Origin: Anaeramoeba ignava BMAN
Taxonomy: Eukaryota; Protista; Anaeramoebae
NCBI GenBank assembly: GCA_028826165.1
Contig: JAPDFW010000125.1
Location: forward strand, 806,001-870,000
Length of the DNA stretch: 64,000 nucleotides
Reading direction: 5' to 3'
Shown here: piece after piece, positions 485 to 57,178 of the stretch
How positions within the stretch are numbered: the first letter of the stretch is position 1
How the letters are laid out: every line of letters starts with the position of its first letter
The notes under the pieces: model-generated
Database searches by the model: none
What the model saw: the letters and a program-made list of their open reading frames with translations, nothing else
Told to the model about the DNA's origin: nothing
Made by a program: the position numbers and the translations under genes

Positions 485-2140
485 TTAAATGAAATAAGTT
501 TCAAGTTCATCAACAACCCATGAACTAAAAGAACCAGCTAAATAACTTTGAGCTTCATTTGTATTATAAGTAATTCCATTAGGCAAATTATAACTATAAC
601 CAAAATTTGAATAACCAGGTTGTAAATTAGAATCTAAGCCAAAATCACAATTTCCTCCTTCATTTCCACCAAATCTTGGACCCCAACTTGAAAAATATTC
701 AATTCCACTCCCTTTTTTATATGTAAATTTCGCAGGTATTCTATCCCCTTTATCATTTCTTAATGAAAAAATAAATGCATTTGAATCCGAAATATAATTG
801 TTTGGAGTTCCTTTCCATCCAACTTCAGTGAATCCTCCAAAAATAAAATTATCTTTTGTTTTGATAATAACTAATGCTTTTCCTTTATTATCAACTGCTT
901 TATGCCAATTTTGAGAATCAAATCCATCTCTTTTTGCTGAAAATCCTTTTTTCATTTTAGAAAAAAAATCATTATCATTTATCCATTCTTGTAATTTCTT
1001 AACATATTCAATATCTTTAATAATTTCTGAAAATTGAGGAAAATTTTTTCTGATTTCTTCTAATTTTTTCTCAAGTTCCAAATCTTTTTGATATTGATCT
1101 CGATATTTATCAAAAATAGGTTTCATATCTTCAACTTCTTTCTTCCATTTCTCTTCAATTTCTTTGTTTTTCTCTTCAACTTCTTTCTTCCATTTCTCTT
1201 CAATTTCTTTCTCTTTGTTTTCAATTTCTTTGTTTTTATCTTCAATTTCAATTTTCATTTGTTGATTTTCTTTTTGATTATCTTGAATAACTTTGTTTTG
1301 AATATCAACTAAAATAGATTTGGGAAAAAAATCAAATTGTTTTAATTTATCAAAATCTTGTTTTGAAATTGAATCTTTATCAAATAATGAAAAAAAAGAA
1401 TGAAATAATCTTTTCTTTGCATTCATTTTGTGTTCATATTTCTTTAATTTTAATCTTTGATTTCTTTTTTCAATCCAATTATTTAAAAATTGAAAAAAAT
1501 CAAATTGAAAAATTTCTTTTTTTTCTTGTTTAAATTGAATAAATTTGATAATTTCTTCTTTAGTTAAATTGAATAAATTTTCATTATTCTGAATTTGGGA
1601 AAAATTTTGATTTATTAATTCAAAACATTTTATTTCAATTTCATTTGAATTTAAATTTCGATTTTGGAATAAAAATTGGAAAAAATTTGAATAATTAATT
1701 GAATTTGAAATTTTTTTTTGAATAATTTCTTTCAATAAATTTAATTTAAAATAAATTGAAATTTCCAATAATTGGAGAAGATTTTCTTGATTCTCAAAAG
1801 AAATATTTCCATAATAAATATAACTCAAAATTGATTCCATTTCTTTTTTATTAAATTGATTTAAAAAAATAGAAAGAGATTCTTGCCTTAATAATTCATT
1901 AAAAAAAGGAGATCTTGAAGATAAAATTGATTTATGAACTTTAATTTCAAAAGGATTTGATTTATTCTCAACAAAAATTGAAAAATCTTTAAATGAATTT
2001 CCATTTAAAAGGTTTGAATAATCTTTAATTAAATTTTTTGTTACTTTTTTTTCTAAATTTTTCATTTCATTTTGATTTTCATTTTGATTTTCATTTTGAT
2101 TTGCATTTTCAATTTGGTTATTATTATTATTATTATCCAT
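485..2140 (-). CDS. BTB/POZ + coiled-coil + TLDc domain protein
   Basis: Intronless 551-aa ORF. BTB motif FKDFSIFV...IKVHKSILSSRSPFF...ILSYIYYG; KEIEEKWKKEVE repeats; C-terminal TLDc motifs AKRDGFDSQNWHKAVDNKG, FIFGGFT, DSNAFIFSL, WGPRFG, VDELETY. Confidence 0.9.
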   Translation of the reverse strand: MDNNNNNNQIENANQNENQNENQNEMKNLEKKVTKNLIKDYSNLLNGNSFKDFSIFVENKSNPFEIKVHKSILSSRSPFFNELLRQESLSIFLNQFNKKEMESILSYIYYGNISFENQENLLQLLEISIYFKLNLLKEIIQKKISNSINYSNFFQFLFQNRNLNSNEIEIKCFELINQNFSQIQNNENLFNLTKEEIIKFIQFKQEKKEIFQFDFFQFLNNWIEKRNQRLKLKKYEHKMNAKKRLFHSFFSLFDKDSISKQDFDKLKQFDFFPKSILVDIQNKVIQDNQKENQQMKIEIEDKNKEIENKEKEIEEKWKKEVEEKNKEIEEKWKKEVEDMKPIFDKYRDQYQKDLELEKKLEEIRKNFPQFSEIIKDIEYVKKLQEWINDNDFFSKMKKGFSAKRDGFDSQNWHKAVDNKGKALVIIKTKDNFIFGGFTEVGWKGTPNNYISDSNAFIFSLRNDKGDRIPAKFTYKKGSGIEYFSSWGPRFGGNEGGNCDFGLDSNLQPGYSNFGYSYNLPNGITYNTNEAQSYLAGSFSSWVVDELETYFI

Positions 2141-6589: not shown

Positions 6590-9500
6590 AAATTAAATAA
6601 AATTAAATTTAAAAATTAATATAAAAATGGAATAAAATTTAATTATAAAATTAAATAGAATTAAATTTAAAAATAAATTATAAATAAATATTAAATTAAA
6701 ATAAATTTAAAAATTAAAATAAAAATGGAATAAAATTTAATTAAATTTTTAATAATAAAATTAAATAGAATTAAATTAATATTTAATTATAAAATTAAAT
6801 AGAATTAAATAAATATTTAATTTAAAAATAAATTATAAATAAATTATAAAATAAAATAAATTATAAATAAATAATAAATTAAAATAAATTTAAAAATTAA
6901 TATAAAAATGGAATAAAATTTAATTAAATTTTTAATAATAAAATTAAATAGAATTAAATAAATATTTAATTATAAAATTAAATAAAATTAAATTTAAAAA
7001 TAAATTATAAATAAATAATAAATTAAATAAATTTAAAAATTAATATAAAAATGGAATAAAATTTAATTAAATTTTTAATAATAAATTTAAATAGAATTAA
7101 ATAAATATTTAATTATAAAATTAAATAAAATTAAATTTAAAAATAAATTAAAAATAAATAATAAATTAAAATAAATTTAAAAATTAATATAAAAATGGAA
7201 TAAAATTTAATTAAATTTTTAATTATAAAATTAAATAGATTTAAATAAATATTTAATTATAAAATTAAATAAAATTAAATTTAAAAATAAATTATAAATA
7301 AATAATAAATTAAAATAAATTTAAAAATTGAAATAAAAATGGAATAAAATTTAATTAAATTTTTAATAATAAATTTAAATAAAATTAAATAAATATTTAA
7401 TTATAAAATTAAATAAAATTAAATTTAAAAATAAATTATAAATAAATAATAAATTAAAATAAATTTAAAAATTAATATAAAAATGGAATAAAATTTAATT
7501 AAATTTTTAATTATAAAATTAAATAGATTTAAATAAATATTTAATTATAGAAATTAAATAAAATTAAATTTAAAAATAAATTATAAATAAATAATAAATT
7601 AAAATAAATTTAAAAATTAATATAAAAATGGAATAAAATTTAATTAAATTTTTAATAATAAAAATTAAATAAATTTAAATTAATATTTAATTATAAAATT
7701 AAATAAAATTAAATTTAAAAATAAATTATAAATAAATAATAAAATAAAATAAATTTAAAAATTAATATAAAAATGGAATAAAAATTTAATTAAATTTTTA
7801 ATAATAAAATTAAATAAAATTAAATAAATATTTAATTATAAAATTAAATAAAATTAAATTTAAAATAAATTATAAATAAATAATAAATTAAAATAAATTT
7901 AAAAATTAATATAAAAATGTAATAAAATTTAATTAAATTTTTAATTATAAAATTAAATAGAATTAAATAAATATTTAATTATAAAATTAAATAAAATTAA
8001 ATTTAAAAATAAATTATAAATAAATAATAAATTAAAATAAATTTAAAAATTGAAATAAAAATGGAATAAAATTTAATTAATTTTTAATAATAAAATTAAA
8101 TAGAATTAAATAAATATTTAATTATAAAATTGTATAAAATTAAATTTAAAAATAAATTATAAATAAATAATAAATTAAAATAAATTTAAAAATTAATATA
8201 AAAATGTAATAAAATTTATTCAAATTTTTAATAATAAAATTAAATAGAATTAAATTAATATTAAATTATAAAATTAAATAAAATTAAATTTAAAAATAAA
8301 TTATAAATAAACAATAAATTAAAATAAATTTAAAAATTAAAATAAAAATGGAATAAAAATTTAATTAAATTTTTAATAATAGAATTAAATAGAATTAAAT
8401 TAATATTTAATTATAAAATTAAATAAAATTAAATTTAAAAATAAATTATAAATAAATAATAAATTAAAATAAATTTAAAAATTGAAATAAAAATGGAATA
8501 AAAATTTAATTAATTTTTAATAATAAAATTAAATAGAATTAAATAAATATTTAATTATAAAATTGTATAAAATTAAATTTAAAAATAAATTATAAATAAA
8601 TAATAAATTAAAATAAATTTAAAAATTAATATAAAAATGTGTAATAAAATTTATTCAAATTTTTAATAATAAAATTAAATAGAATTAAATTAATATTAAA
8701 TTATAAAATTAAATAAAATTAAATTTAAAAATAAATTATAAATAAATAATAAAAATAAAATAAATTTAAAAATTAATATAAAAATGTAATAAAATTTAAT
8801 TAAATTTTTAATAATAAAATTAAATAGAATTAAATTAATATTTAATTATAAAATTAATATAAAATTAAATTTAAAAATAAATTATAAATAAATTATAAAT
8901 TAAAATAAATTCAAAAATTAATATAAAAATGGAATAAAATTTAATTAAATTTTTAATAATAAAATTAAATATAATTAAATAAATATTTAATTATAAAATT
9001 AAATAAAATTAAATTTAAAAATAAATTATAAATAAATAAAAATAAAAATAAATTTAAAAATTGAAATAAAAATGTAATAAAAATTTAATTAAATTTTTAA
9101 TAATAAAATTAAATAAAATTAAATTAATACTTAATTATAAAATTAAATAAAATTAAATTTAAAAATAAATTATAAATAAAAATAATAAATTAAAATAAAT
9201 TTAAAAATTAATATAAAAATGTAATAAAATTTAATTAAATTTTTAATAATAAAATTGAATAGATTTAAATTAATATTTAATTATAAAATTAAATAAAATT
9301 AAATTTAAAAATAAATTATAAATAAATTATAAATTAAAATAAATTTAAAAATTAATATAAATTGAATAAAATTTAATTAAATTTTTAATAATAAAATTAA
9401 ATAGAATTAAATAAATATTTAATTATAAAATTAAATAAAAATTAAATTTAAAAATAAATTATAAATAAATAATAAATTAAAATAAATTTAAAAATTAATA

Positions 9501-11940
9501 TAAAAATGGAATAAAATTTAATTAAATTTTTAATAATAAAATTAAATAGAATTAAATAAATATTTAATTATAAAATTAAATAAAATTAAATTTAAAAATA
9601 ATTTATAAATAAATAATAAAATAAAATAAATTTAAAAATGGAATAAAAATGTAATAAAATTGAAATAAAAATGTAATAAAATTTAATTAAATTTTTAATA
9701 ATAAAATTAAATAAAATTAAATAAAATTAAATTTAAAAATAAATTATAAATAAATTATAAAATAAAATAAATTTAAAAATTAATATAAAAATGGAATAAA
9801 ATTTAATTAAATTTTTAATAATAAAATTAAATAAAATTAAATAAATATTTAATTATAAAATTAAATAAAATTAAATTTAAAAATAAATTATAAATAAATA
9901 AATAATTTAAATAAATTTAAAAATTAAAATAAAAATGTAATAAAAATTAATTAAATTTTTAATAATAAAATTAAATAAAATTAAATAAATATTTAATTAT
10001 AAAATTGAATAAAATTAAATTTAAAAATAAATTATAAATAAATAATAAATTAAAATAAATTTAAAAATTAAAATAAAAATGGAATAAAAATTAATTAAAT
10101 TTTTAATAATAAAATTAAATAGAATTAAATAAATATTTAATTATAAAATTAAATAAAATTAAATATAAAAATAATTTATAAATAAATAATAAATTAAAAT
10201 AAATTTAAAAATTAATATAAAAATGTAATAAAATTTAATTAAATTTTTAATAATAAAATTGAATAGATTTAAATTAATATTTAATTATAAAATTAAATAA
10301 AATTAAATTTAAAAATAAATTATAAATAAATTATAAATTAAAATAAATTTAAAAATTAATATAAATTGAATAAAATTTAATTAAATTTTTAATAATAAAA
10401 ATTAAATAGAATTAAATTAATATTTAATTATAAAATTAAATAAAATTAAATTTAAAAATAAATTATAAATAAATAATAAAATAAAATAAATTTAAAAATT
10501 AATATAAAAATGGAATAAAATTTAATTAAATTTTTAATTATAAAATTAAATAGAATTAAATAAATATTTAATTATAAAATTAAATAAAATTAAATATAAA
10601 AAAAATAAATTATAAATAAATTATAAATTAAAATAAATTTAAAAATTAAAAATAAAAATGGAATAAAATTTAATTAAATTTTTAATAATAAAATTAAATA
10701 AAATTAAATAAATATTTAATTTAGAATTAAATAAAATTAAATATAAAAATAAATTATAAATAAATTATAAAATAAAATAAATTTAAAAATTGAAATAAAA
10801 ATGGAATAAAATTTAATTAAATTTTTAATAATAAAATTAAATAAAATTAAATAAATATTTAATTATAAAATTAAATAGAATTAAATTTAAAAATAAATTA
10901 TAAATAAATTATAAATTAAAATCATTTTAAAAATTAATATAAAAATTGAATAAAATTTAATTAAATTTTTAATAATAAAATTAAATAAAATTAAATAAAT
11001 ATTTAATTATAAAATTAAATAAAATTAAATTTAAAAATAAATTATAAATAAATAATAAATTAAAATAAATTTAAAAATTAATATAAAAATGTAATAAAAT
11101 TTAATTAAATTTTTAATAATAAAATTAAATAAAATTAAATAAATATTTAATTATAAAATTAAATAAAAATTAAATTTAAAAATAAATTATAAATAAATTA
11201 TAAAATAAAAATAAATTTAAAAATTAATATAAAAATGGAATAAAATTTAATTAAATTTTTAATAATAAAAATTAAAATAAAATTAAATAAATATTTAATT
11301 ATAAAATTAAATAAAATTAAATTTAAAAATAAATTATAAATAAATTATAAATTAAAATAAATTTAAAAATTAATATAAAAATGTAATAAAATTTAATTAA
11401 ATTTTTAATAATAAAATTAAATAGAATTAAATAAATATTTAATTATAAAATTAAATAAAATTAAATTTAAAAATAAATTATAAATAAATAATAAATTAAA
11501 ATAATTTTAAAAATTAATATAAAAATGGAATAAAATTTAATTAAAATTTTAATAATAAAATTAAATAGAATTAAATAAATATTTAATTATAAAATTGAAT
11601 AAAATTAAATTTAAAAATAAATTATAAATAAATAATAAAAATAAAATAAATTTAAAAATTAATATAAAAATGTAATAAAAATTTAATTAAATTTTTAATA
11701 ATAAAAATTAAATAGAATTAAATAAATATTTAATTATAAAATTAAATAAAATTAAATATAAAAATAAAATTATAAATAAATTAATAATTTAAAATAAATT
11801 TAAAAATTAATATAAAAATGGAATAAAATTTAATTAAATTTTTAATTATAAAATTAAATAAATTAAATAAATATTTAATTATAAAATTGAATAAAATTAA
11901 ATTTAAAAATAAATTATAAATAAATTAATAAATTAAATAA
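6590..11940. repeat. 5.3-kb satellite-like tandem array, ~144-bp unit, ~37 copies
   Basis: Marker ATGGAATAAAA/ATGTAATAAAA at 6908, 7051, 7195, 7339, 7483, 7628 ... 11818; almost pure A/T. Confidence 0.95.
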
Positions 11941-16946: not shown

Positions 16947-18587
16947 TAAAATTATTTATTTAGATTATTTTAAATAAATTTATTAATTAATTATTAAATT
17001 AATATTATTTAATTTTATTTATATTTATTTATTAAAATATTTTTATTTTTTAATTTAATATTTAATAATAAAAATTAATATAAATTTATTAAATTTAATA
17101 TAAAATTATTTATTTAGATTATTTTAAATAAATTTATTAATTAATTATTAAATTAATATTATTTAATTTAATTTATATTTATTTATTAAAATATTTTTAC
17201 TTTTTTAATTTAATATTTAATAATTAAAATTAATATAAATTTATTAAATTTAATATAAAATTATTTATTTAGATTATTTTAAATAAATTTATTAATTAAT
17301 TATTAAATTAATATTATTTAATTTTATTTATATTTATTTATTAAAATATTTTTACTTTTATTAATTAAATATTTAATAATAAAAATTAATATAAATTTAT
17401 TAAATTTAAATTAATATTATTTATTTAGATTATTTTAAATAAATTTATTAATTAATTATTAAATTAATATTATTTAATTATTATTTATATTTATTTATTA
17501 AAATATTTTTATTTTTTAATTAAATATTTAATAATCAAAAATTAATATAAATTTATTAAATTTAATTTATATTTGTTTATTTAGATTATTTTAAATAAAT
17601 TTATTAATTAATTATTAAATTAATATTATTTAATTTTATTTATATTTATTTATTAAAATATTTTTATTTTTAATTTTAATATTTAATAATAAAAATTAAT
17701 ATAAATTTATTTAAATTTAATTTAAAATTATTTATTTAGATTATTTTTAAATAAAATTTATTAATTAATTATTAAATTAATATTTTATTTAATTTTTTAA
17801 TTATTTATTTATTTATTTATTTAAAAATATTTTTATTTTTAATTTTTAATATTTAATAATAAAAATTAATATTAAATTTATTAAATTTAAATTAATATTT
17901 ATTTATTTAGATTATTTTAAATAAATTTATTAATTAATTATTAAATTAATATTATTTAATATTATTTATATTTTTATTTATTAAAAATTAATTTTTAATT
18001 TAATATTTAATTTTAATCAAAATTAATATAAATTTATTAAATTTTAATTTAGATTTGTTTTTTTTTATATGATTTATTTTGAATAAATTTATTAATTAAT
18101 TATTAAATTAATTATTTAATATTATTTATATTTTTATTTAATTTTAAATTAAAATATTTTTATTTATTAATTAAATATTTAATAATAAAAATTAATATAA
18201 ATTTATTAAATTTAAATTAATATTATTTATTTAGATTATTTTAAATAAATTTATTAATTAATTATTAAATTAATATTATTTAATATTATATTTATTTATT
18301 AAAATATTTTTATTTTTAATTAAATATTTAATAATTAAAATTAATATAAATTTATTAAATTTAATTTATATTTATTTATTTAGATTATTTTAAATAAATT
18401 TATTAATTAATTATTAAATTAATATTATTTAATTTTATTTATATTTATTTATTAAAATATTTTTACTTTTTAATTTAATATTTAATAATTAAAATTAATA
18501 TAAATTTATTAAATTTAATATAAAATTATTTATTTAGATTATTTTAAATAATTTTATTAATAATTATTAAATTAATATTATTTAATT
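16947..18587. repeat. Tandem array, ~155-bp unit, ~10 copies (same family as 22337-22830)
   Basis: Marker TAGATTATTTT at 16961, 17115, 17270, 17426, 17582 and onward. Confidence 0.9.
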
Positions 18588-22336: not shown

Positions 22337-22830
22337 AATTATTTATTTAGATTATTTTAAATAAATTTATTAATTAATTATTAAATTAATATTATTTAAT
22401 TTTATTTATATTTATTTATTAAAATATTTTTATTTTTTAATTTAATATTTAATAATTAAAATTAATATAAATTTATTAAATTTAATTTAATATTATTTAT
22501 TTAGATTATTTTAAATAAATTTATTAATTAATTATTAAATTAATATTATTTAATTTTATTTATATTTATTTATTAAAATATTTTTATTTTTTAATTAAAT
22601 ATTTAATAATTAAAATTAATATAAATTTATTAAATTTAATTTAGATTTATTTATTTAGATTATTTTAAATAAATTTATTAATTAATTATTAAATTAATAT
22701 TATTTAATTTAATTTATATTTATTTATTAAAATATTTTTATTTTTTAATTAAATATTTAATAATAAAAATTAATATAAATTTATTAAATTTAATTTAAAT
22801 TTGTTTATTTAGATTATTTTAAATAAATTT
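22337..22830. repeat. Tandem array, 154-bp unit, ~3 copies (same family and orientation as 16947-18587)
   Basis: Marker TAGATTATTTT at 22348, 22502, 22656, 22810. Confidence 0.9.
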
Positions 22831-22909
22831 AATAATAAAATTTAATTTAAAATTATTTTTCCGAATTTATTTGAAATTCATTTTTTCTTTCTTTTTTTGG
22901 TTTTTTAAA

Positions 22910-24520
22910 ATGAAAAATTTAAATAAAGAAAATCAACTTCTTATTGATATAAAAAAACTTTACACACAATCAATATTATCAGATTTTACAATTATAACAG
23001 AAAAGAATAAGAAATTTTTCTGTCACAAAAATATTCTTGCATGTCGTTCTTCTTATTTCAGAACTTACTTTTGTGAATCAACAGAAAATGAAATAATTTT
23101 TTCTAATATTAAACCTAAAATTGTTGATATTATTCTCAACTATATATATACAAATGAACTTGATTTATCAGATCTTACTTTTATTGATCGTTTCAATTTA
23201 TCTCAATTTGGTTCAAAATTAATTCCTTCCTTAAATTGGAAGTTTGAAATCAAACAAAATTTAAAGAAACTAAATGATTCTTTTTTAATTGATTTAAAAA
23301 ATTTAAATTTCAAAGATTTTTTACAAATTATCCAATTTTTCCTCAATGAAATTTATTTGAGTTTTCCAGATTTTTTTGATTCTGTAAACTTTGGGAAATT
23401 ATCTATTGAGAAGATTATTGAAATTATAAATATTGGGTACGAAAATCCAAAATTCACCAAAAATATAGAAATTATCAAATATTTTGCAAATTTTAATTTT
23501 GAAAAATTTAAATTAGATGATTTACAATTTAGACTTATTGGATATGATGTGAATCAATTAAAAACCAAAATCCAAAAAATAACAGACTTCATTTTCAAAG
23601 ATCCAGAATTTATTTTATATTATCTTAATGAAGATTTTGTGAAGAATGAAATTTGGAATAAATCAGATAATTTTTCAGAAAATTTAAAATTTTTAATCCA
23701 AAAATTTCAATATACAATTTATGAATCATTTGAAGAGAAATCGGAAGATTTTGAATTTTTAAGACAAAAAGTTGTTCCTTTTGATAAACAAGTTGAAATA
23801 TTGAATAAAAATTCCAATCTACAAATCAAGAAAAAAATTAATCAAGAAGAAAAAACAAAATATATTGATAATCAAAAAACAAAAGAAGTAACAAGTAGTA
23901 AGGAAATTGATCAAAAAAGAAAATCTCAAAATTTTCCAAAACAAATTTTTGCAAATCTTAATCAAATTTTTGAAAAAAAAAGGAAAACAAAAATTGGATG
24001 GAATTTAATATTTGAAACAAAAATTTCAACTCTTTCATCTTTTCATGAAAATTGTGATAATAAACCAAATTTAATAGCAATAATTGAAACAAATTCACAG
24101 GATATTTTTGGGGGTTATACTTCAGTTGGATGGAATTTCAAGAACAAAAACAAACAAGATTTTTCAAATAATATTTCCAAATTTTTAATTAAAGATCCAA
24201 ATGCTTTTTTATTCATTTTGCAAATTGAAGGCAAAATTCAAGAAAACCCTTTAATTTTCAATATCAAAGATTCTCATGTTGATAGTTCTATTGGTTATAA
24301 CAAAGATATTTCAATATTTTTCGCTTTTGATCTTCTTATTCCAATTGATCAATCAAATTCTAGTTTTATTTCTTTATTTAATGATAAAAATTCTCGAAAA
24401 TATGAATCATTAAATCAAAAAGAGAATGAAAAAGGATTAAAATTTTTTGGAAAATTAAATAATCAAAAATTGAAAAAGATGAAAATTTTTCAACTTGAAT
24501 TTAAAGAAAATAATTTTTAA
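22910..24520 (+). CDS. BTB/POZ + TLDc domain protein
   Basis: First ATG at 22910. BTB motif LSDFTII...FFCHKNILACRSSYF...ILNYIYT; TLDc motifs FHENCDNKP, DIFGGYTSVGW, DPNAFLF. Confidence 0.85.
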   Translation: MKNLNKENQLLIDIKKLYTQSILSDFTIITEKNKKFFCHKNILACRSSYFRTYFCESTENEIIFSNIKPKIVDIILNYIYTNELDLSDLTFIDRFNLSQFGSKLIPSLNWKFEIKQNLKKLNDSFLIDLKNLNFKDFLQIIQFFLNEIYLSFPDFFDSVNFGKLSIEKIIEIINIGYENPKFTKNIEIIKYFANFNFEKFKLDDLQFRLIGYDVNQLKTKIQKITDFIFKDPEFILYYLNEDFVKNEIWNKSDNFSENLKFLIQKFQYTIYESFEEKSEDFEFLRQKVVPFDKQVEILNKNSNLQIKKKINQEEKTKYIDNQKTKEVTSSKEIDQKRKSQNFPKQIFANLNQIFEKKRKTKIGWNLIFETKISTLSSFHENCDNKPNLIAIIETNSQDIFGGYTSVGWNFKNKNKQDFSNNISKFLIKDPNAFLFILQIEGKIQENPLIFNIKDSHVDSSIGYNKDISIFFAFDLLIPIDQSNSSFISLFNDKNSRKYESLNQKENEKGLKFFGKLNNQKLKKMKIFQLEFKENNF

Positions 24521-40858: not shown

Positions 40859-43800
40859 ATGAATCGTTTATTACGTTTTTTAAAAAGTTCAAATAAAACA
40901 ACAGTTCTAACAACACTTAATCAATTAAATGAAAAACTTTCACTTGCAACAGAAGATACATTACAAGGTTTTTCTATTGATCAATTTGTTCCTTTACTTG
41001 TTCAACTTATAAATGAAGAAAATGAACCAGATTTAAATGGTAAAATTGATTTAATTTTATATTTAATTTCTAAATTTAAATTTTAATTTTAATTTTAATT
41101 CTAAATTTAAATTTTAATATTAATTTTAATTTTAATTCTAAATTTAATTCTAATTTTAATTCTAAATTTAATTTTAATTCTAATTCTAAATTTAATTTTA
41201 ATTTTAATTTTAATTTTAATTTTAATTTTAATTTTAATTTTAAATTTAAATTTAAATTTAATTCTAATTCTAATTCTAATTTTAATTTTAAATTTTAATT
41301 TTAATCCTAATTTTTTATTAAATTTTTTAGTTCTTGCTTGCCGTACTTTATATAATTTAATTGTTGCTCTTCCTGAATCTTCTAATTTAATTTCAAATTT
41401 AGCAACTCCTACATTAATTACAAAATTGCTTACAATAGAATATATTGATTTAGCAGAACTTGCTTTAGAAGTAAAAATTTTATATTTTATATTTAATTTT
41501 AATTTATATTTAATTTTATATTTAATTTTATATTTAATTTTAAATTTAATTTTATATTTATTTTTTTATTTAATTTTATATTTAATTTTATATTTTTAAT
41601 TTATTTTATATTAAATTTTATATTTAATTTTATATTAAATTTTATATTTAATTTTATATTTAATTTTATATTAAATTTTATATTTAATTTTATATTTAAT
41701 TTATATTAAATTTTATATTTAATTTTATATTTAATTTTATATTAAATTTTATATTTAATTTTTATATTAAATTTTATATTTAATTTTATATTTAATTTTA
41801 TATTTAATTTTATATTTAATTTTATATTTAATTTTATATTAAATTTTTATTTATTTTATTTAAATTTATTTTAAATTTTATATTTAATTTTTTTATATTT
41901 AATTTTATTTAATTTTATATTTAATTTTATATTTTAATTTTATTTTATATTTAATTTTATATTTAATTTTATATTTAATTTTATATTTAATTTTATATTT
42001 AATTTTATATTTAATTTTTATATTTAATTTTATATTTAATTTTATATTTAATTTTATATTTAATTTTATATTTAATTTTATATTTAATTTTATATTTAAT
42101 TTTATATTTAATTTTATATTTAATTTTATATTTAATTTTATATTAAATTTTATATTTAATTTTATATTTAATTTTATATTAAAAAAAAAGGTTCTAGAAA
42201 GAATTTCAAGAGAACATCATAGATATGTTTTAAGACAAGGTGGTTTAATGGCAGTACTCGCTTATTGTGATTTCTTCTCTTCTCCTATTAAACAAAAAGC
42301 ACTTGAATCAGCTGCAAATATGACTCTTTCAATTCCTCCAAATTGTTTTCATTTAGTTTCAGATTCAATTCAACTTCTTATTAACCAATTAAATTCACAA
42401 AACAAAAAAAGTAAGAAAATTATCAAAAAAAAAAAGGAAAATTTTATTAACAAAATTTTCTTTTTCTTTTTAGCTCTTGATTACACTTGTTTATCAATCT
42501 TTCGAATTTCAAATCATTTTATTCAAGATCCAGAAAGAATAAATTCTCTTATCGATGAAAATTTATTTAAAAAACTCTTGAATTTAATTTCTCAAGAATC
42601 TAAAATTGGGAATATAATAAGTTCAACAACTTTGTCTTCGATAATTAGGCTATTTAAGGATTTATGCTTAATTAAATCTAAATCAGCAGAATTAATTCTC
42701 AAAAATGGAGGTTCAGATATTATTTCCCAATTTTTACTTGAACAATCAGGATTTTCAACTCCATTAAAATGTAATTTAATTTTATTTTAATTTTAAATTT
42801 AATTTTAAATTTATTTTTTTTAAAAAAAAAACAACAACAGCTAAAAATACCAATTTCGAAAGCCCAAATATGAAATCAAAATCAAGACATTCCAGTCAAT
42901 TATACCAATTTATATTACTTTTAGATTCTCTTTTACCAGATTTGTCTGAAGATATTTACCCAAAATTTTTAGTGATCCGAAACCAAACACAAGAAAAAAA
43001 ACAAGAAAAACCTCCTAAATTTGGATTTTATAAGGATGATTATAAACAAAATGATATTGGATATCAAAATATCGCACTTGAAAAACAGGAAAACCAACAA
43101 CATACTGAAATTCTTGAGAAAAATCAAACCCTTTTCCAAGATTTCTTTAAGAAAATATTCACACCATTACTGAACATTTACATTAACACACCATCACAAA
43201 AAATTCGAAGAACAACTCTCCAAATTCTTCTTAAAATGCTCTTTTTTTCCAACGATTTGACTAAATTGCTAGAAAGTTCAGAACTGAAAATTTCTTCAAT
43301 AATATCTGATCTTATTAGAAAGAAAGAGGGACTTATTGGAGCTGCTTATGGAATAATGTTTGCGTTTTTGTTGATGGAAAAAATGGAGGATACTTTTCGA
43401 GAAATATTTGATAGAGAGGGAATTTTTTCTGAAATAAAAAAAACTTTGGATTCCGCAAATGTTGCAAATGAAGACAATTCCTCTCCTTCAAAAAATATCG
43501 AAACAGAAATGTTGGAAATTTCCGATTTGCCAAAAGTTCCAAATCAAACAAGTGAATTTCAAGACAATATGGAACTTGTGGATGATAATATAATCATAAA
43601 TCCTCCAAAATACGAATTGGAATTAGAACCCATTGAGGAAGAGCCAAAAACAAAGGTTGAAAAGGAAACTGAAACTGAAACTGAAAAAAATGAAATTTTG
43701 GAAGATCAATTTTCTCCTCTTTATACTAATTTCCAGTTTAAAGATGAATTAGAAACGAAAGATGAATCAGAAACTAAAAATGAATCAGAAAATAAAAATG

Positions 43801-46800
43801 AATACAATAGTTATTATTCCCAATATTACAATCCACAACCTCCTACAACTGAAACAAACGAATCGCAATTCTACTTCAACTCACAAAAAACAGAACCCAC
43901 AAAGAAAAACGAAGATCAATACACTCCAAATTATAACCCTTATAGTTATTATTCCAATTATTATTCATACGGAAACTATCCTTATTACACACAAGACGAC
44001 GCAAAGCAAGAAACAGATGAACTTTCTCCCAATGATTCTCAAGATTTTACGTATAATGAATACGAAGACAGTAATGTTGATGAGACTCAACCAAATCCTA
44101 ATCCTTTCGAAACTGAGCATAAATCCAATTTCCGTTCATATTCAACAAGAGATTCCAATTCAAATCCCAATAGATATCCGAGTTATGGACGTTCTGAAAG
44201 ATTAGGAAAAACTGAGAAGCCTTTTTCTTACTCAAATTACCGCAGAGGAAGACATCAACATTCTTATTATTATCCTGAAGTTTCTGATAATATTTATGAA
44301 AATGAACTAAGTCCAACAGAGTCTCCATTCTCACCAAATCAAGATTTCGCAAAGGAATTAGAAGCAGATCCCCAATTAGAAGATTGGTATATTGAGAAAT
44401 TGAATATTTTTGTTGCTTGTTTTCTTGCAGAACAGAATTTAAATGGATCTTTATCAATGAAAACAATTGAAGAAATTCGAGAATATTGCGAAAAACTTAA
44501 AATTGATGAAAAGCAGCTAGAATCTTTACAGAAAATTGCAAAATACTTTGGTACACAAAACTCACTTTCTTCGTATGAAATTAATGAAAGCAACATTTTC
44601 TTATATTTGCGCAATTATTTCACAGATATAGAAAACAATGAGGAATATTTAAACACTTTAAATAATCGCATTTCGAGGTTTCTCAAATCATTTTCATCAA
44701 TTGATCTCAATAGCAAATTACAACAACCTTTGGTTATTCTTTTGATTGAAAAACTGCACGAAATTTTCAATCGAGTCGAGAATTTCGCTGTGAAAATTTA
44801 TCCACAAATTTCATTAGAAATGCTGAAAAAGCCTATTCAATTACAATTTTCTTTGGTGAATTCGGAGTATTCATTACAAAAACTACCCGAATCATCATTT
44901 TCTTTAATTTCTTCAGTGACATTAACAGATCTTGAATTTTTGGTTTGGGAAAAAGTAAGATTGGATTTTGATCACCAACTTTATGAAGATAACGAAGATG
45001 ATTTACTCAATAGAATTGTATCACAAGATCCACTTTCATTTTATCCATTTTTACGGAATAAAAAATACCACAGAAGAGGTAGATATGGTTATGGTTATGG
45101 ATACGGTTATGGTTATGGTTATGGAGAAAATAAATATCGAGATGAAAATTCTTATGGATATGGAAATTATCACGGTTATAGTTACAATTCAAATCGTTCC
45201 AAAAATATTTCTTCCCAAAATTCTCTTCCTTACAATTCAGCACAAACCCAAAAATCACCAAAATCAAGATCACATCGACATCATTCAAAAACTTCTCAAT
45301 CAAGAAATGCCAACTATAGTGTTGAAGATCAAGAAAGAAGGGAATTATTTGGTTTAAATCACGAAGATCAAGATCAAGATCAAGATCAAGATCAAAATGT
45401 AAAAATTTCCAAACATAAATTGCAGAAATCTCAAACTGAAGAACCAACTAATTTCAAATCAAAAATTCGGTTTAAACAACGAGAAATTTTGAAAAGAGAA
45501 ATGAAGAAGCAAAAATTTTCGATGGAAAAATATTCTCATTATCTTGAATTTTATTATCAAGGAACTAAACTTTCTTATAACAAACCGTTTTTCCACCAGA
45601 TATTTGAAATTTGGATGAAGAATTCCTTTACAAGATCAACAGAAGAAGTTGATCGAGTTTGGGAGGAAGTTCATGTTATTGAATATAAAAGAATAAGACC
45701 ACTTCCAAAGGAAGTTCTATCAATTCCGCAAGTGAAAGAGTTTATATCCGCAAATAAGCCAAAATCAAGCTATTACAATTACAATTATCATTATAATTTA
45801 TTTGATGCAGATGAGAGTGATATTCCCGAAAATTCTGATGTTTATTTAAACAGTCAAGAAATCAATTTGCCAATCACTGTTGAAACAACTTCAATTTCGA
45901 AGGAATTTCGGGAGATCAAAAAATATAAAGCAGAAGATTCCAATTCTAATAATATAGAAAAAACAACAGAAAATTCACTTCCAGAAGTGATTTTACATCT
46001 TTTAAAATGCATTTATTTGATCGTTTATTATGGATCAGTTAATTTAGAGGAAAAAATTATGATGAAAATTGATGAGGAAATTGAACTTGGAAATAAAGAA
46101 GAAAATAACAAGGAAATTAAAAATAACAAGGAAATCAAAATTGAAAAAGATAACAAGGAAATCAAAATTGAAAAAGAAAACAAGGAAATCAAAATGGAAA
46201 AAGAACAAGATCAGCCACAATCTCAAGAACCAAATCCAGAATCATTTGTTTCCCTGAAACTGGACTCGAAATTAAGATCCCATTTGGAAGATCCATTCAC
46301 AGTTTTCACAGGATCTTTCCCATCTTGGATCCCATCTTTAATGCAATCAGGATTCATGTTTCTTTTTACATTTGAATCACGACTTCTTTATTTCCGATCG
46401 ATTTGCATTGATCAAATAAGAGGTCTTCAGCAAATCCAAATGAACAATGCCAAGCATATTGAAAAACATAGAAACATTGATTTTGGAAGAATTCCTCGTT
46501 TTAAAGCAGAAATTTCACGAGATTCTGTACTTGAAAATGCAATTGAAATATTTGACAATCCAAGAGCACTTTCAAGTGAGATGCTTGAGATTACTTATCA
46601 AGGAGAAGTTGGATTTGGATCAGGTCCTTCGCAGGAATTTTATCATCTTGTCTCAAAAGAACTCAAGCACAAATCACTTAATTTATGGTGCAATTCAACC
46701 ACTTCAGAAAAATCTTCCGATTATGTTTATTCTTCATACGGGCTTTTTCCAAAACCTTTGAATACAATGAAAAAGAACGAAAATCTTTTCAATTTAAAAC

Positions 46801-47747
46801 TGAACCAAAAAAAATATCCTCGAAAAAAACGCAATATGAATTTAAGTGAGAATTTAAGTGAGAATTTAAGTGAAGATTTAAACGAAGAGAAAAAACAAAT
46901 GAAACTGTTTGAATTCACTGGGAAATTAGTTGCTCGCGCAATTTCTGACCAAAGACAACTAGATCTGCCATTTTCAGAACCATTTTTCAGAGCAATAACA
47001 GGATCCAAATTAACTTTCAACGATCTCGAAATATTAGAACCAGAAATATCAAAAACACTGAAAGAATTCAGCATTCTCACTCAAAAATACAACGAAACAA
47101 AAGACGAAAATTTAACTTACAAAGGAATAAAAATCGAAGATTTAGGACTAGTTTTTACACTTCCAGGAAACAACGAAATTGAACTTAAAAACGGCGGAAA
47201 AGAAACCGATTTAAAATTAGAAAACTTAGAAGAATGGATGAATTTAGTAATTGACAAAAAAATCGGGAGAGGAATTCAAAAGCAAGTTTCATCTTTCCAA
47301 AAAGGATTCAATCAAATTTTCCCGATTGATCATTTAAAAATTTTCACTTACGATGAATTTGACTTGTTAATTAACGGATGCGTTGAGCAATGGAATCAAG
47401 AATTGCTTTTCCAAAGCATTAAATGCGAACATGGCTATTCAAAAGATCATCAAATCATTTACAGTCTTATTGAATTCATGTGTGAACTTTCGCCTTCAGA
47501 ACAAAGAAAATTTATCAGATTTATTACTGGAAGTTCTCATTTACCAGTTGGTGGTATTTCTGCTTTGAAACCCCCTTTAACTGTTGTTAAAACTGATGTT
47601 TTTCCTTTTAATCCTGATGATTATCTTCCTACTGTTATGACTTGTGCAAATTATTTGAAATTACCTGAATATTCTTCAAAACAAGTTTTGGTTCAAAAAT
47701 TTAAAATTGCTATAAAAGAAGGTCAATCAAGTTTTCATTTATCTTAA
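40859..47747 (+). CDS. TRIP12: TRIP12/UFD4/UPL3-type HECT E3 ubiquitin ligase (5 exons)
   Basis: Exons 40859-41039, 41331-41470, 42191-42410, 42474-42770, 42841-47747. Motifs LSLATEDTLQGF, IEYIDLAELALEVLERIS, YQGEVGFGSGPSQEFY, LPTVMTCANYLKLPEY; ends SFHLS. Confidence 0.92.
41480..42180. repeat. Intronic (TAATTTTATATT)n 12-mer array
   Basis: Fills intron 2 of the HECT gene. Confidence 0.9.
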
Positions 47748-50470: not shown

Positions 50471-50554
50471 TTTAATTTTTACTTAAAACAAAAATCAAAA
50501 AAATGAAAAAATGAAAAAATGAAAAATGAAAAAATGAAAAAATGAAAAAATTTA

Positions 50555-50785
50555 AATCAATTTTAAAAAATATTTGACATTAAATTTAATATAAAAAATG
50601 ATTTAAAATAAATTTATAATAATTTATTAAATATTTATTTAATTCATTTTTGAAATAAATTTATTAACAAATTTGAAATATTTTGATTAAATTTTTTAAA
50701 AGAATTAAATTAATTTTAAAAAACATTTAACATTAAATTTAATATAAAAAATAATTTTAAATAAATTTATAATAATTTATTAAAT

Positions 50786-50790
<5 letters not shown>
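50555..50790. repeat. ~153-bp tandem unit, ~1.5 copies (same family as 56790-57178), followed by (GATT)n
   Basis: TTTGACATTAAATTTAATATAAAAA...AAGAATTAAATTAATTTTAAAAAAC is shared with the right-hand array. Confidence 0.8.
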
Positions 50791-50826
<36 letters not shown>

Positions 50827-50953: not shown

Positions 50954-53900
50954 TCAATTTTTTTGTAATTTTTCTAAAACTAATTTTCCTTTTTCTTGAA
51001 TATCTTGATTATTTGGGAAATTATTCATTGCTTTAATAATAGGTTCAATTCCATTTAAATTTCTAATTTTAATTTTGTTTTCTATTTTGTTATTTTTTTG
51101 AGAGAAATAAATTAAAAATAATTAATTTTTTGGATTAATTTTTTGGAAATAAAATTGATTAAATATTTTTGATTAATAATAAATAATTAATAATTAATTA
51201 AATTAATTTTCTTATTTTATTTTATTTTATATTTTATTTACCTTCATTATTAGAAGCAATATTCCATAAAGCTCCACATCCATAATTTTGAATATCTTGA
51301 TTATTTGGGAAATTATTCATTGCTTTAATAATAGTTTCAATTCCATTTAAATTTCTAATTTCAATTTTGTTTTCTATTTTGTTATTTTTTTGAAAGAAAT
51401 AAATTGAAATTAAAAATAATTTTTTGGATTAATTTTTTGGAAATAAAATTGATTAAATATTTTTGATTAATAATTAATAATAAATAATTAATTAAATTAA
51501 TTTTCTTATTTTATTTTATATTTTATTTACCTTCATTATTAAAAGCAATATTCAATAAAGCTCCACATCCTTGATATTGAATATCTTGATTATTTGGGAA
51601 ATTATTCATTGCTTTAATAATAGATTCAATTCCTTTTAATTTTCTAATTTCAATTTGGTTTTCTATTTTGTTATTTTTTTGAGAGAAATAAATTTAAATT
51701 AAAAATAATTAATTTTTTGGATTAATTTTTTGGAAATAAAATTGATTAAATATTTTTGATTAATAATTAATAATTAATAATTAATAATTAATTAAATTAA
51801 TTTTCTTATTTTTATTTTATTTTTTATTTTATTTACCATTATTAAAAGCAGCAATATCCCATAAAGCCCAACATCCTTTATGTTGAATATCTTGATTATT
51901 TGGGAAATTATTCATTGCTTTAATAATAGGTTCAATTCCATTTAAATTTCTAATTTCAATTTTGTTTTCTATTTTGTTATTTTTTTGAGAGAAATAAATT
52001 AAAATTAAAAATAATTAATTTTTTGGATTAATTTTTTGGAAATAAAATTGATTAAATATTTTTGATTAATAATTAATAATTAATAATTAATAATTGATTA
52101 AATTAATTTTCTTATTTTATTTTATTTTTATTTTATTTACCATTATTAAAAGCAGCAATATTTCCTAAAGCTCCACATCCTTGATATTGGATATCTTGAT
52201 TATTTGGGAAACTATTCATTGCTTTAATAATAGTTTCAATTCCATTTAAATTTCTAATTTCAATTCTGTTTTCTATTTTATTATTTTATTGAAAGAAATA
52301 AATTTAAATTAATTAAAATTAATTTTTTGGATTAATTTTTTGGAAATAAAATTGATTAAATATTTTTGATTAATAATTAATAATTAATAATTGATTAAAT
52401 TAATTTTCTTATTTTTATTTTATTTTATTTTATTTTATTTACCTTCATTATTAGAAGCAATATTCCATAAAGCTCCACATCCATATTTTTGAATATCTTG
52501 ATTATTTGGGAAATTATTCATTGCTTTAATAATAGGTTCAATTCCTTTTAAATTTCTAATTTCAATTTTGTTTTCTATTTTGTTATTTTTTTGAGAGAAA
52601 TAAATTAAAATTAAAAATAATTAATTTTTTGGATTAATTTTTTGGAAATAAAATTGATTAAATATTTTTGATTAATAATGAATAATTAATAATTAATTAA
52701 ATTAATTTTCTTATTTTATTTTATTTTTTATTTTTATTTACCATTATTAGTAGAAATATTCTTTAAAGCTCCACATCCTTGATATTGAATATTTTGATTA
52801 TTTGGGAAATTATTCATTGCTTTAATAATAGGTTCAATTCCTTTTAAATTTCTAATTTCAATTTTGTTTTCTATTTTGTTATTTTTTTGAAAGAAATAAA
52901 TTGAAATTAAAAATAATTAATTTTTTGGATTAATTTTTTGGAAATAAAATTGATTAAATATTTTTGATTAATAATGAATAATTAATAATTGATTAAATTA
53001 ATTTTCTTATTTTATTTTATTTTTTATTTTTATTTACCATTATTAAAAGCAGCAATACTCCATAAAGCTCCACATCCTTGATATTGAATATCTTGATTAT
53101 TTGGGAAATTATTCATTGATTTAATAATAGGTTCAATTCCTTTTAAATTTCTAATTTCAATTTTGTTTTCTATTTTGTTATTTTATTGAGAGAAATAAAT
53201 TTAAATTTAAATTAATTAATTTTTTGGATTAATTTTTTGGAAATAAAATTGATTAAATATTTTTGATTAATAATTAATAATAAATAATTAATTAAATTAA
53301 TTTTCTTAATTTATTTATTTTTATTTTATTTACCATTATTAAAAGCAGCAATATCCCATAAAGCCCAACATCCTTTATATTGAATATCTTGATTATTTGG
53401 GAAATTATTCATTGCTTTAATAATAGGTTTAATTCCATTTAATTTTCTAATAGTATTTCGATTATCTTGAAGTTTTGAGTTTTGATATTTATTTTTAATT
53501 TTGTTTTGATAAATATAAATCAAATCAAATCCAAAAATAAATTAAATTAAAAATAAAATTAAATTAAATTTAAATTTTAGTTTTAATTTTAGTTTTAGAA
53601 AATAATGAAATAATAAATTTTACTTTTATTTTGTTTTGCAAATTTTTGTAAAATTAAACATCCATTTTCTTGAATTTTTTGATTAATTAGACATTGTTTC
53701 ATATATTTTATTGTTTCTTCAATAGATTCTTTTTTATTTGATTTATTTGATTTATTTAATTTATTTGATTTATTTGATTTATTTGATTTATTTGATTTAT
53801 TTGATTAATTTGATTAATTTGATTAAAAAATAATTTACTTTCATTTAAATTTGAAATTTGTTTTATAAAATTTTCTAAATATTGATGTGCTTTTCCAGAA

Positions 53901-55965
53901 ACATTTCTTTCTAATTCTATTTGAATTTGTGTGATTTTATTTTTTTGTTTTTGAATTTTGTTTTCTTTTTGTTGAATAGTTTGTTTAAATTGATTTATTT
54001 CTTTATCTTTTTGTTGAATATTTTGTTTAAATTGATTTATTTCTTTATCTTTTTGTTGAATATTTTGTTTAAATTGATTAATTTCTTTATCTTTTTGTTG
54101 AATAGTTTGTTTTAGTTGATTTATTTCTTGATCTTTTTGTTGAATATTTTGTTTTTGATTTATTTCTTGAAATTGATTTATTTCTTGATCTTTTTGTTGA
54201 ATATTTTGTTTAAATTGATTTATTTCTTGGTAGTTTTTGTTTTAAATTGATTTATTTCTTGATCTTTTGTTGAATATTTTGTTTTAAATTGATTTATTTC
54301 TTGATCTTTTTGTTGAATATTTTGTTTTTGTTTTTGTTTTAAGTTGATTTATTTCTTGATCTTTTTGTTGAATAGTTTGTTTAAATTGATTAATTTCTTG
54401 ATCTTTTTGTTGAATATTTTGTTTAAATTGATTTATTTCTTGATCTTTTTGTTGAATATTTTGTTTAAATTGATTTATTTCTTTATCTTTTTGTTGAATA
54501 TTTTGTTTAAATTGATTTATTTCTTTATCTTTTTGTTGAATAGTTTGTTTAAATTGATTAATTTCTTGATCTTTTTGTTGAATATTTTGTTTAAATTGAT
54601 TAATTTCTTTATCTTTTTGTTGAATTATTTTGTTTTGTTTTTTTGTTTTAGTTGATTTATTTCTTGATCTTTTTGTTGAATAGTTTGTTTAAATTGATTA
54701 ATTTCTTGATCTTTTTGTTGAATAGCTTGTTTTAGTTGATTTATTTCTTTATCTTTTTGTTGAATAGATTGTTTAAATTGATTTATTTCTTTATCTTTTT
54801 GTTGAATTATTTTGTTTTGTTTTTTTATTGTTTTTTTAAGTTTTTGATTTTTTTGATTTATTAATTGAAGTTGATCAGTTGAAGGTAAAATTAGATTATT
54901 TTCATTTCTGGAATCATTTGAAATAAATCCATCATTTTTAATAGTATCAATAATTAAATAAAAATTTTGAATTTCATTATTAATTTCTTGAATTTGAATT
55001 GGATCAATATATTTTTCTTTATTTATTAAATTTTTATTGCTTTTTTTAAATTTATTTTTCCAATCTTGTGATAATTTCCAAATTAAATCAATTTTGTTTT
55101 CTTTTGATGTTGATTGAATAATTTGAATAATTTCTTTTAATTCTTTATTATTAATTGATCCAATTTGTTTTTCTTCAATAATTTTATTAATATTTTCTTT
55201 AATAAAATTTTCACAAATATTTGAAAGATAATTTGATTCAATAGAAATACTTTTGAAATAAATTGGAATAACATTTTTTTCATTAATTTGTTCTGAAACT
55301 TCTTTTTCAATTTTGATTATTAAACTTGTTAATTTAAAATATTTTGAAAGTTGAAAATATTTTTCAAATTTATTTAAATCAAATTTAAATTCTGAATAAT
55401 AAATAAATGAAATGATTGATTTAACAATATCATATTCAAATTGTGGAAGATATAATTCTTCATTTTCTGTTTTTTCATGATTATTTTCATAAAAAAATCT
55501 TGATCTTGAATTAAGTATTGATTTATGACAAGGAATTTTTTGATTATTTTTTCCAGCATAAATTGTAAAATCACAATTTTCTTCATTTTCAAACATTATT
55601 TTATAATTTGAAAGAAGTTCACAAATTAAAAATTTATTAAGTTCTTGAGAAGGAAATTGATATAATTTTGATATTTGAATTTTTTGTGATTTTTCTTTTG
55701 AATAAATTTCTTTGAATGTAATTTTTTGATTTTGATTTTGATTTTGATTTATATTTTGATTTTGATTTTGATTTTGATTTTGATTTTGGATTTGATTTTG
55801 ATTTATATTTTGATTTTGATTTTGATTTTGATTTTGATTTTGATTTTGATTTTGATTTTGATTTTGCATTTGAATAATTTGATCTTGAACATTCATTTGA
55901 TTTTGATTTTGTAATAAAAGTTGAATTTGATTTTGCATTTGAATAATTTGATCTTGAACATTCAT
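50954..55965 (-). CDS. BTB/POZ + coiled-coil stalk + Armadillo-repeat protein, one ARM repeat per exon
   Basis: BTB motif CDFTIYAG...IPCHKSILNSRSRFF...IISFIY. Stalk runs to donor at 53838. Cap exon 53728-53624; ARM exons 53465-53334, 53169-53038, 52870-52742, 52574-52443, 52272-52141, 51968-51837, 51662-51531, 51373-51242; last exon 51081-50954. All these introns are GT-AG phase 1. Frameshifts occur in the 42-bp repeat (54100-54650), and the true start may lie upstream of 55965. Confidence 0.8.
51000..53465 (-). repeat. Tandem exon+intron cassettes, 289-306-bp period, 8 full units plus a terminal partial unit
   Basis: Exon starts are spaced 296, 299, 296, 302, 304, 306, 289 and 292 bp apart; introns are near-identical. 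Confidence 0.95.
53950..54830 (-). repeat. Coding 42-bp repeat (IQQKD[Q/K]EINQFKQ[N/T]), ~20 copies
   Basis: Units like TTGTTTAAATTGATTTATTTCTTGATCTTTTTGTTGAATATT; each unit is two heptads. Confidence 0.9.
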
Positions 55966-56789: not shown

Positions 56790-57178
56790 TAATTTAATAA
56801 AATAATTGAAATATTTTAATTAATTTTTTAAAAGAATTAAATTAATTTTAAAAACATTTGACATTGAATTTAATATAAAAAATAATTTTAAATAAATTTA
56901 TAATAATTTATTAAATATTTATTTAATTCATTTTTGAAATAAATTTATTAAAATAATTGAAATATTTTGATTTAATTTTTTAAAAGAATTAAATTAATTT
57001 TAAAAACATTTGACATTGAATTTAATATAAAAAATAATTTTAAATAAATTTATAGTAATTTATTAAATATTTATTTAATTCATTTTTTAAATAAATTTAT
57101 TAAATTAATTGAAATATTTTAATTAATTTTTTTAAAAGAAATAAATTAATTTTAAAAAACATTTGACATTGAATTTAC
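56790..57178. repeat. ~153-bp tandem array, ~2.5 copies
   Basis: The G of marker TTTGACATTG falls at 56860, 57012, 57165. Confidence 0.85.

Follow-up and report, generated by a model that had tools for sequence, protein, structure and literature searches.

Organisation of the locus

The window (the whole 64-kb stretch of DNA that was analysed) carries on its minus strand a gene of Anaeramoeba ignava with the order BTB, coiled-coil stalk, N-cap exon, eight armadillo (ARM) repeat exons and C-cap (Table 1). A. ignava is a metamonad amoeba that lives anaerobically and with bacterial symbionts; its genome is 80.65% A+T (PMC11550330). The exon-intron structure consists of splice sites predicted from the sequence through their AG and GT flanks. 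The eight ARM exons lie where the original prediction had placed them; they are 129 or 132 nt long, stop-free and flanked by AG and GT, with introns in phase 1, and each encodes one complete H1-H2-H3 repeat of the Aardvark/LRRK2 type. The tandem structure of the array is also picked up by TRF (period 296, 8.2 copies). The helix-3 strings of the eight repeats and their multi-base codon alleles agree with the earlier list, and the introns between the ARM exons are, as had been claimed, near-identical. Synonymous differences are as rare as had been reported, with one plain case, ATT/ATC, in codons 2-40 of repeats 2-8. The repeats had also been described as sharing one scaffold; they are indeed near-identical, except that repeat 1 has a helix 1 of its own (NNRNTIRKLNG). 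The array is missed by the ORF track, as had been observed, no ORF of at least 80 aa overlapping the ARM exons. The predicted splice junctions are the same as those of the annotated paralogues P0006 and P0009, whose NCBI gene models are themselves predictions.

Table 1. Positions of the BTB-ARM gene parts and of neighbouring features in the window.
Feature	Position	Strand	Details
Large 5' exon	53839..55965	-	Q/N-rich head, BTB, helical region, coiled-coil stalk; predicted donor GT 53838, phase 1; start uncertain
BTB/POZ domain	55291..55596	-	PF00651, E 2e-16
Coiled-coil-like stalk	53957..54817	-	42-nt (14-aa) tandem units
N-cap exon	53624..53728	-	105 nt, phase 1-1; at least 42 matches in the genome
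ARM repeat 1 exon	53334..53465	-	132 nt; helix 3 YKGCWALWDIAAF; distinct helix 1
ARM repeat 2 exon	53038..53169	-	132 nt; helix 3 YQGCGALWSIAAF
ARM repeat 3 exon	52742..52870	-	129 nt; helix 3 YQGCGALKNIST
ARM repeat 4 exon	52443..52574	-	132 nt; helix 3 KYGCGALWNIAS
ARM repeat 5 exon	52141..52272	-	132 nt; helix 3 YQGCGALGNIAAF
ARM repeat 6 exon	51837..51968	-	132 nt; helix 3 HKGCWALWDIAAF
ARM repeat 7 exon	51531..51662	-	132 nt; helix 3 YQGCGALLNIAF
ARM repeat 8 exon	51242..51373	-	132 nt; helix 3 NYGCGALWNIAS
C-cap exon	50954..51081	-	polar charged helix 3 and stop codon; the same cap ends paralogues and annotated P0006 and P0009
Eight introns	51082..53333	-	GT..AG, phase 1, 157-174 nt, 2.6% pairwise difference; alternate with ARM exons
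152-bp AT-rich repeat	50545-50795		one side of the gene
152-bp AT-rich repeat	56791-57177		other side of the gene
RTF2 gene	50470-47884	-	PF04641
RTF2 first predicted intron	~50223-48563	-	GT..AG
HECT ubiquitin ligase	42870-47747	+	1625 aa, E 7e-72; 3 kb from the ARM gene
BTB-TLDc gene	485-2140	-	
BTB-TLDc gene	22871-24520	-	
AT-rich tandem arrays	6594-11937, 16947-18587, 22338-22858		435-bp unit x12.4; 154-155-bp unit at two separate places

The gene is flanked by a 152-bp AT-rich repeat in direct orientation, 93-95% identical; the segment between the two flanks may have been duplicated or inserted, with the repeat at its ends. At this identity the repeat was not seen in the 20 other loci, where only AT-rich matches of about 72% were found, which rules out a family-wide flanking element. 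Among the neighbours are an RTF2 gene, whose first predicted intron consists almost wholly of a 12-bp minisatellite in 138 copies, a HECT ubiquitin ligase and, further off, large AT-rich tandem arrays.

Reading frame of the stalk

On the minus strand as assembled, four units of the stalk (starts at 54681, 54373, 54318 and 54275) have lengths of 56, 55, 43 and 73 nt. None of these is divisible by 3, so the frame shifts and the BTB ORF runs into a stop at 54625-54627. Taken at face value this would make the copy in the window a recent pseudogene of a functional family, or one that yields only a truncated BTB-stalk protein, and the 42-nt units contain no GT donor by which the odd ones could be skipped. 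The breaks, however, fall in A/T runs within a tandem repeat that is beyond short-read polishing, and the A. ignava BMAN assembly was built from R9.4/R9.5 nanopore reads (PMC11550330). All ten exons downstream of the stalk are clean. In the paralogues L026, L031 and L035 the large 5' exon is a single open frame from the BTB as far as the same donor, and the stalk of L031 has 27 exact 42-nt units without a break. As the paralogues are intact, it would seem likely that the frameshifts are nanopore errors in the assembly, and rather unlikely that this copy is dead or truncated.

The gene family in A. ignava

A search for paralogues with the repeat cassette, which the original prediction had proposed, was carried out in the 42.8-Mb, 147-contig BMAN assembly and found a large family. 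The 301-bp cassette gave at least 399 matches and a single ARM exon at least 1374 first-look candidates; we put the size of the family at 42 genes or more. In the 21 loci studied the arrays have between about 3 and 26 repeats, 272 repeat units in all, with introns of 78-281 nt. The frame is well conserved: among the 221 internal exons that have both a donor and an AG in the expected place, 214 are divisible by 3 in length and 212 are free of stops as well. Broken exons are concentrated in the loci L025 and L029. L029 and L028, both on contig C61, are BTB-less arrays with near-identical starts, and the first 3 kb of L029 are full of single-base indels, which makes this copy either a stretch of unpolished assembly or a duplicate in decay.

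A BTB domain, of one of two subtypes, lies upstream of 16 of the fetched arrays, and in the annotated paralogues P0006 and P0009 the same ARM cassette stands behind a RING-kinase-SH3 module, so that the suggested tie to ubiquitin-ligase-type modules recurs beyond the window. No BTB was matched upstream in six loci within the DNA fetched, which shows that coupling to a ligase is not universal. Related repeats precede RCC1-BTB in P0004 and P0026, and both PF00514 and PF23744 score above cut-off in paralogues. The genome gives 3711 first-look BTB candidates and has several cullin genes. The ARM family therefore belongs to a BTB expansion that is very large, and its fusion to BTB may be opportunistic. 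BTB-TLDc genes, found twice in the window and also at L031 and L034, belong to the same expansion. The main text of the genome paper makes no mention of BTB or armadillo expansions (PMC11550330).

Structure of the repeats and of the BTB domain

An AF2 model of residues 500-847 of the paralogue P0006 (pLDDT 95) consists of regular three-helix repeats with an H1-H2-H3 period of 43, in keeping with the tandem repeats of about 42 aa that build the superhelix of armadillo proteins. The top PDB matches to this model in Foldseek are engineered ARM proteins, several of them peptide-bound, and beta-catenin. The best Pfam models for the repeats are ARM_LRRK2, ZER1-like and ARMC5. The ladder of helix-3 asparagines at ARM position 37, a hallmark of armadillo proteins, is present (167 of 207 exons).

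For the N-terminal part, the window gene has, by its predicted exons, the arrangement of Cullin-3 adaptors, in which the BTB is joined to a separate domain of the substrate-binding type. Of the 3-box/BACK helices of such adaptors, a BACK match came, weakly, from the older paralogue P0007 alone. The proteins matched by the BTB region of the window are all from A. ignava. The model of the window BTB is unusable (pLDDT 40), and the closest PDB sequences to this BTB are the BTBs of CP190 and not those of Cul3 adaptors. That the BTB binds Cul3 we infer from its domain family.

Variation is concentrated in the groove

Positions 29, 30, 33, 36, 37, 40 and 41 of an ARM repeat presumably line its concave peptide groove, as in importin-alpha and designed ARM proteins, and we take them to be the set that is randomised in designed ARM libraries. 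Alignment with the ARM consensus helix NEQILQEALWAL, for which PMC11228518 gives a coding primer, equates them with exon codons 30, 31, 34, 37, 38, 41 and 42. For 190 library repeats from 21 loci we compared pairwise pN and pS within loci. At ARM 29, 30, 33, 36 and 37, the helix-3 groove codons, the median within-locus pN is 0.311, against a pS of 0.056, an intron difference of 0.035 and a pN of 0.037 at other codons. In every one of 20 loci groove pN lies above pS, and the groove changes at about nine times the intron rate. Because the variable sites had been picked from the window, the test was repeated without it: first- and second-position diversity in the groove is then 0.308 and that of synonymous third positions 0.017, with 19 of 19 loci in agreement. 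The predicted excess of non-synonymous over synonymous and intron change, focused on the helix-3 groove, is thus borne out; it is an excess in pairwise pN over pS and introns, a tree-based codon model for the groove codons having failed to converge (omega 1.000). For comparison, pN/pS is 0.49 in the BTB and the helices that follow it (six close paralogues). Groove-codon pS is itself raised (0.22), in part through multi-base allele differences, as would be expected if old multi-base alleles were kept and remixed.

The list of variable sites in the original prediction is right for ARM 29, 30, 33, 36, 40 and 41; entropy is highest at ARM36, with 3.0 bits, followed by ARM40 with 2.7 bits. Position 37, also listed, is mostly the conserved asparagine (pN 0.10), while two further sites vary, ARM position 26 (pN 0.19) and exon codon 3 (pN 0.31). 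Codon 3 (K/Q/R/E/N), perhaps at the edge of the groove, lies outside helix 3 and is almost undifferentiated among loci; its sole linkage partner is codon 40.

Surface positions of any repeat protein are less constrained, and recombination homogenises introns and scaffold, so the pattern might be read as neutral concerted evolution of a tandem repeat whose groove is merely an unconstrained surface. Sites that were only relaxed would, however, be expected to differ at the intron level and not at some nine times that level. The exposed codons 17, 20, 21, 24 and 25 of helix 2 and the loop have a pN of at most 0.011, which shows that the groove variation is not a general relaxation of the surface. 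ARM36 is also informative. Its codons with a synonymous choice between A and G end in G in 116 cases and in A in one, while elsewhere in the same exons G-ending codons make up 56 of 3041. Single steps link the 16 codons found at this position into a network centred on TGG, 13 of the steps being non-synonymous and 2 synonymous. Third-position changes are seen when they alter the amino acid and hardly ever when they do not. In a genome with 80% A+T, the bias and the network together indicate that amino acid turnover has outpaced the decay of the synonymous G. Neutral drift of the surface is largely refuted by the groove-intron contrast, by the repeat of the test outside the window, by the low variation of the exposed codons and by the ARM36 pattern, and we reject the neutral explanation as highly improbable.

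How the diversity arises

The nearest neighbour of a repeat lies within its own locus in a proportion of 0.74 for the intron, 0.49 for the scaffold and 0.34 for the groove, where 0.07 is expected by chance. Only 4 identical exon pairs occur among the 190 exons, and the 190 repeats show 158 different strings at the seven groove positions. The common groove alleles are each found in 9-19 loci. In 6 of 18 loci, positions 29-30 form four-gamete patterns with position 33 that involve multi-base alleles. Strong linkage is mainly between codons 1-3 apart, as in the NNLSF block, with little beyond about 3 codons; since groove sites further apart than this are mostly unlinked, diversity must also be remixed inside the exons. 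The modular array that had been proposed is borne out, but shuffling of whole exons explains only part of its diversity, because helix-3 sites reassort within exons. Judged from the sequences, the groove data fit unequal crossing-over of cassettes combined with short intra-exon conversion tracts. Part of the mosaic look could come from recurrent mutation or from reads that were mis-mapped during polishing.

We consider it very unlikely that a dedicated diversifier, be it a targeted mutator, DGR-like mutagenesis, programmed somatic rearrangement or regulated exon skipping, makes new arrays within a cell lineage. The symmetric phase-1 cassettes would keep the frame after any skip, and the NNG pattern of ARM36 has a superficial resemblance to adenine mutagenesis of an AAG template. 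Yet ordinary recombination and selection explain the data, and synonymous adenines nearby are almost invariant (codon 5 is GAA in 200 cases and GAG in none, codon 29 is CAA in 206), which rules out DGR-like adenine-wide mutagenesis. The window ORFs scanned include neither a reverse transcriptase nor a recombinase.

Distant relatives

Apart from proteins that bear the name A. ignava, the strong matches are distant and for the most part less than 40% identical. Several distant Aardvark-type arrays likewise combine a conserved scaffold (difference 0.2-0.35) with a variable groove (difference 0.6-0.85). The non-ARM parts among the 129 distant matches, most of which have no Pfam match, include kinases (8), BTB (4), U-box (3), RING (2), caspase-like (2), MLKL N-terminal (2) and ADP-ribosyltransferase (2) domains. 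Though the counts are small, these partners are suggestive of a sensor-effector use. P0082, P0094, P0047, P0117, P0155, P0011 and P0144, from unrelated genomes and metagenomes, are groove-focused ARM arrays with caspase-like, MLKL-like, U-box, RING or BTB domains. In P0144, a relative from Hondaea, the variable array lies on one exon; groove variation does not need the exon-per-repeat layout, and such a requirement is ruled out.

Proposed function

Taken together, the dozens of genes in this family look like a previously undescribed library of protein binders that diversifies fast. On balance we favour the interpretation that the family is a germline repertoire of variable ubiquitin-ligase substrate receptors, probably aimed at foreign proteins. 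In such a receptor a coiled-coil spacer would carry the N-terminal module, either a BTB that probably binds a Cullin-3-type scaffold or, in some paralogues, RING-kinase-SH3, and would be followed by the capped ARM solenoid. The Asn37 ladder would hold the backbone of an extended peptide, and its side chains would be read by ARM positions 26, 29, 30, 33, 36, 40 and 41. Unequal crossing-over of the near-identical phase-1 cassettes would alter the number of repeats within the range seen (about 3 to 26) with the frame kept, while short gene-conversion tracts would remix groove alleles within and between loci and homogenise introns and scaffold. Selection would favour amino acid change at the groove codons, and the pressure is likely to come from foreign proteins that change, those of a symbiont, an endoparasite or a virus; the receptors would bind these proteins and bring about their degradation.

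The binders might instead be diversified for host targets, self/non-self recognition or signalling, with the BTB serving for oligomerisation or as a scaffold in membrane traffic and not for Cul3. The existence of ARM-only loci, the kinase and SH3 partners, which suggest signalling, and the CP190 dimerisation BTBs as nearest solved BTBs are all in keeping with this. Lasting turnover of the groove in 20 loci is nevertheless hard to square with host partners that change slowly, and the RING, like the U-box of distant relatives, is a ligase module itself. We therefore think such a host-directed role unlikely, and prefer receptors for foreign proteins.

More speculatively, microbial eukaryotes could have in their Aardvark-type ARM arrays a class of variable intracellular sensors that has gone unrecognised, of which the A. 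ignava version would be an exon-cassette repertoire, actively re-assorted by exon skipping or rapid rearrangement, that polices proteins of bacterial symbionts or of parasites via ubiquitylation; this broader proposal is distinctly unlikely to hold in full. If the interpretation as receptors for foreign proteins is correct, the family would be nature's equivalent of the armadillo libraries made by design. It would also be a candidate repertoire for recognition in a protist that is free-living and keeps its bacterial symbionts under management in a symbiosome. Each repeat is a defined module in which a handful of residues vary, and this opens to direct test an old idea, the degradation of foreign proteins by cullin adaptors that evolve fast.

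Comparison with known systems

Repeats of high identity, concerted evolution and positive selection at ligand-facing positions are also known from the WD40 and TPR domains of fungal NLRs such as HET-E. Their repeats, however, are not exon cassettes, they need a NACHT or NB-ARC core, and their output is cell death rather than ubiquitylation.

ZYG11B and ZER1 are ARM-type ligase receptors and, like ARMC5, ABAP1/ARIA and Aardvark, they are conserved genes in few copies, with divergent, fixed repeats. The A. ignava family differs from receptors of this kind in its near-identical scaffolds, variable repeat number, hypervariable groove codons and dozens of genes. The joining of ARM repeats to a cullin adaptor is itself known, from ARMC5-CUL3 (PMC9462479) and the plant ARM-BTB proteins ABAP1/ARIA (PMC8121025), and the dictyostelid Aardvark (P0008) combines an F-box with ARM repeats. 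Designed armadillo repeat proteins (PMC11228518; PDB 5MFM, 6S9O) share with the A. ignava genes a capped array of consensus repeats with specificity from helix-3 residues; they are engineered and their modular reading of peptides has been demonstrated (PMC11228518), whereas in A. ignava such reading is a prediction. The literature searched, which misses most subscription journals, gave no prior description of ARM cassettes combined with ligase-type modules and groove diversification in a metamonad.

The F-box and MATH-BTB adaptors of nematodes have a conserved adaptor module, positive selection on the substrate-binding part, birth-death evolution and a hypothesis of foreign-protein degradation (summarised in PMC4334554). 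Their substrate domains do not come as tandem one-exon cassettes and so, unlike the A. ignava repeats, do not make a combinatorial repeat library.

The ROCO (LRR) and NB-ARC-TPR genes of brown algae have one repeat per exon, shuffling, diversifying selection, birth and death of genes and a proposed role in immunity, and alternative splicing of their repeat exons has been demonstrated (PMC3341825; PMC11378527). They and the A. ignava genes both place one repeat on each symmetric-phase exon (phase 1 from predicted sites in A. ignava) and both diversify at ligand-facing residues. The algal genes combine ROC-COR or NB-ARC with LRR or TPR repeats, while those of A. ignava, a metamonad, carry ARM repeats on BTB or RING-kinase-SH3 and are remixed inside exons as well. 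The A. ignava family works like the brown-algal repeat genes and the nematode adaptors and is a member of neither; the exon-per-repeat LRR and TPR genes of brown algae are its closest precedent.
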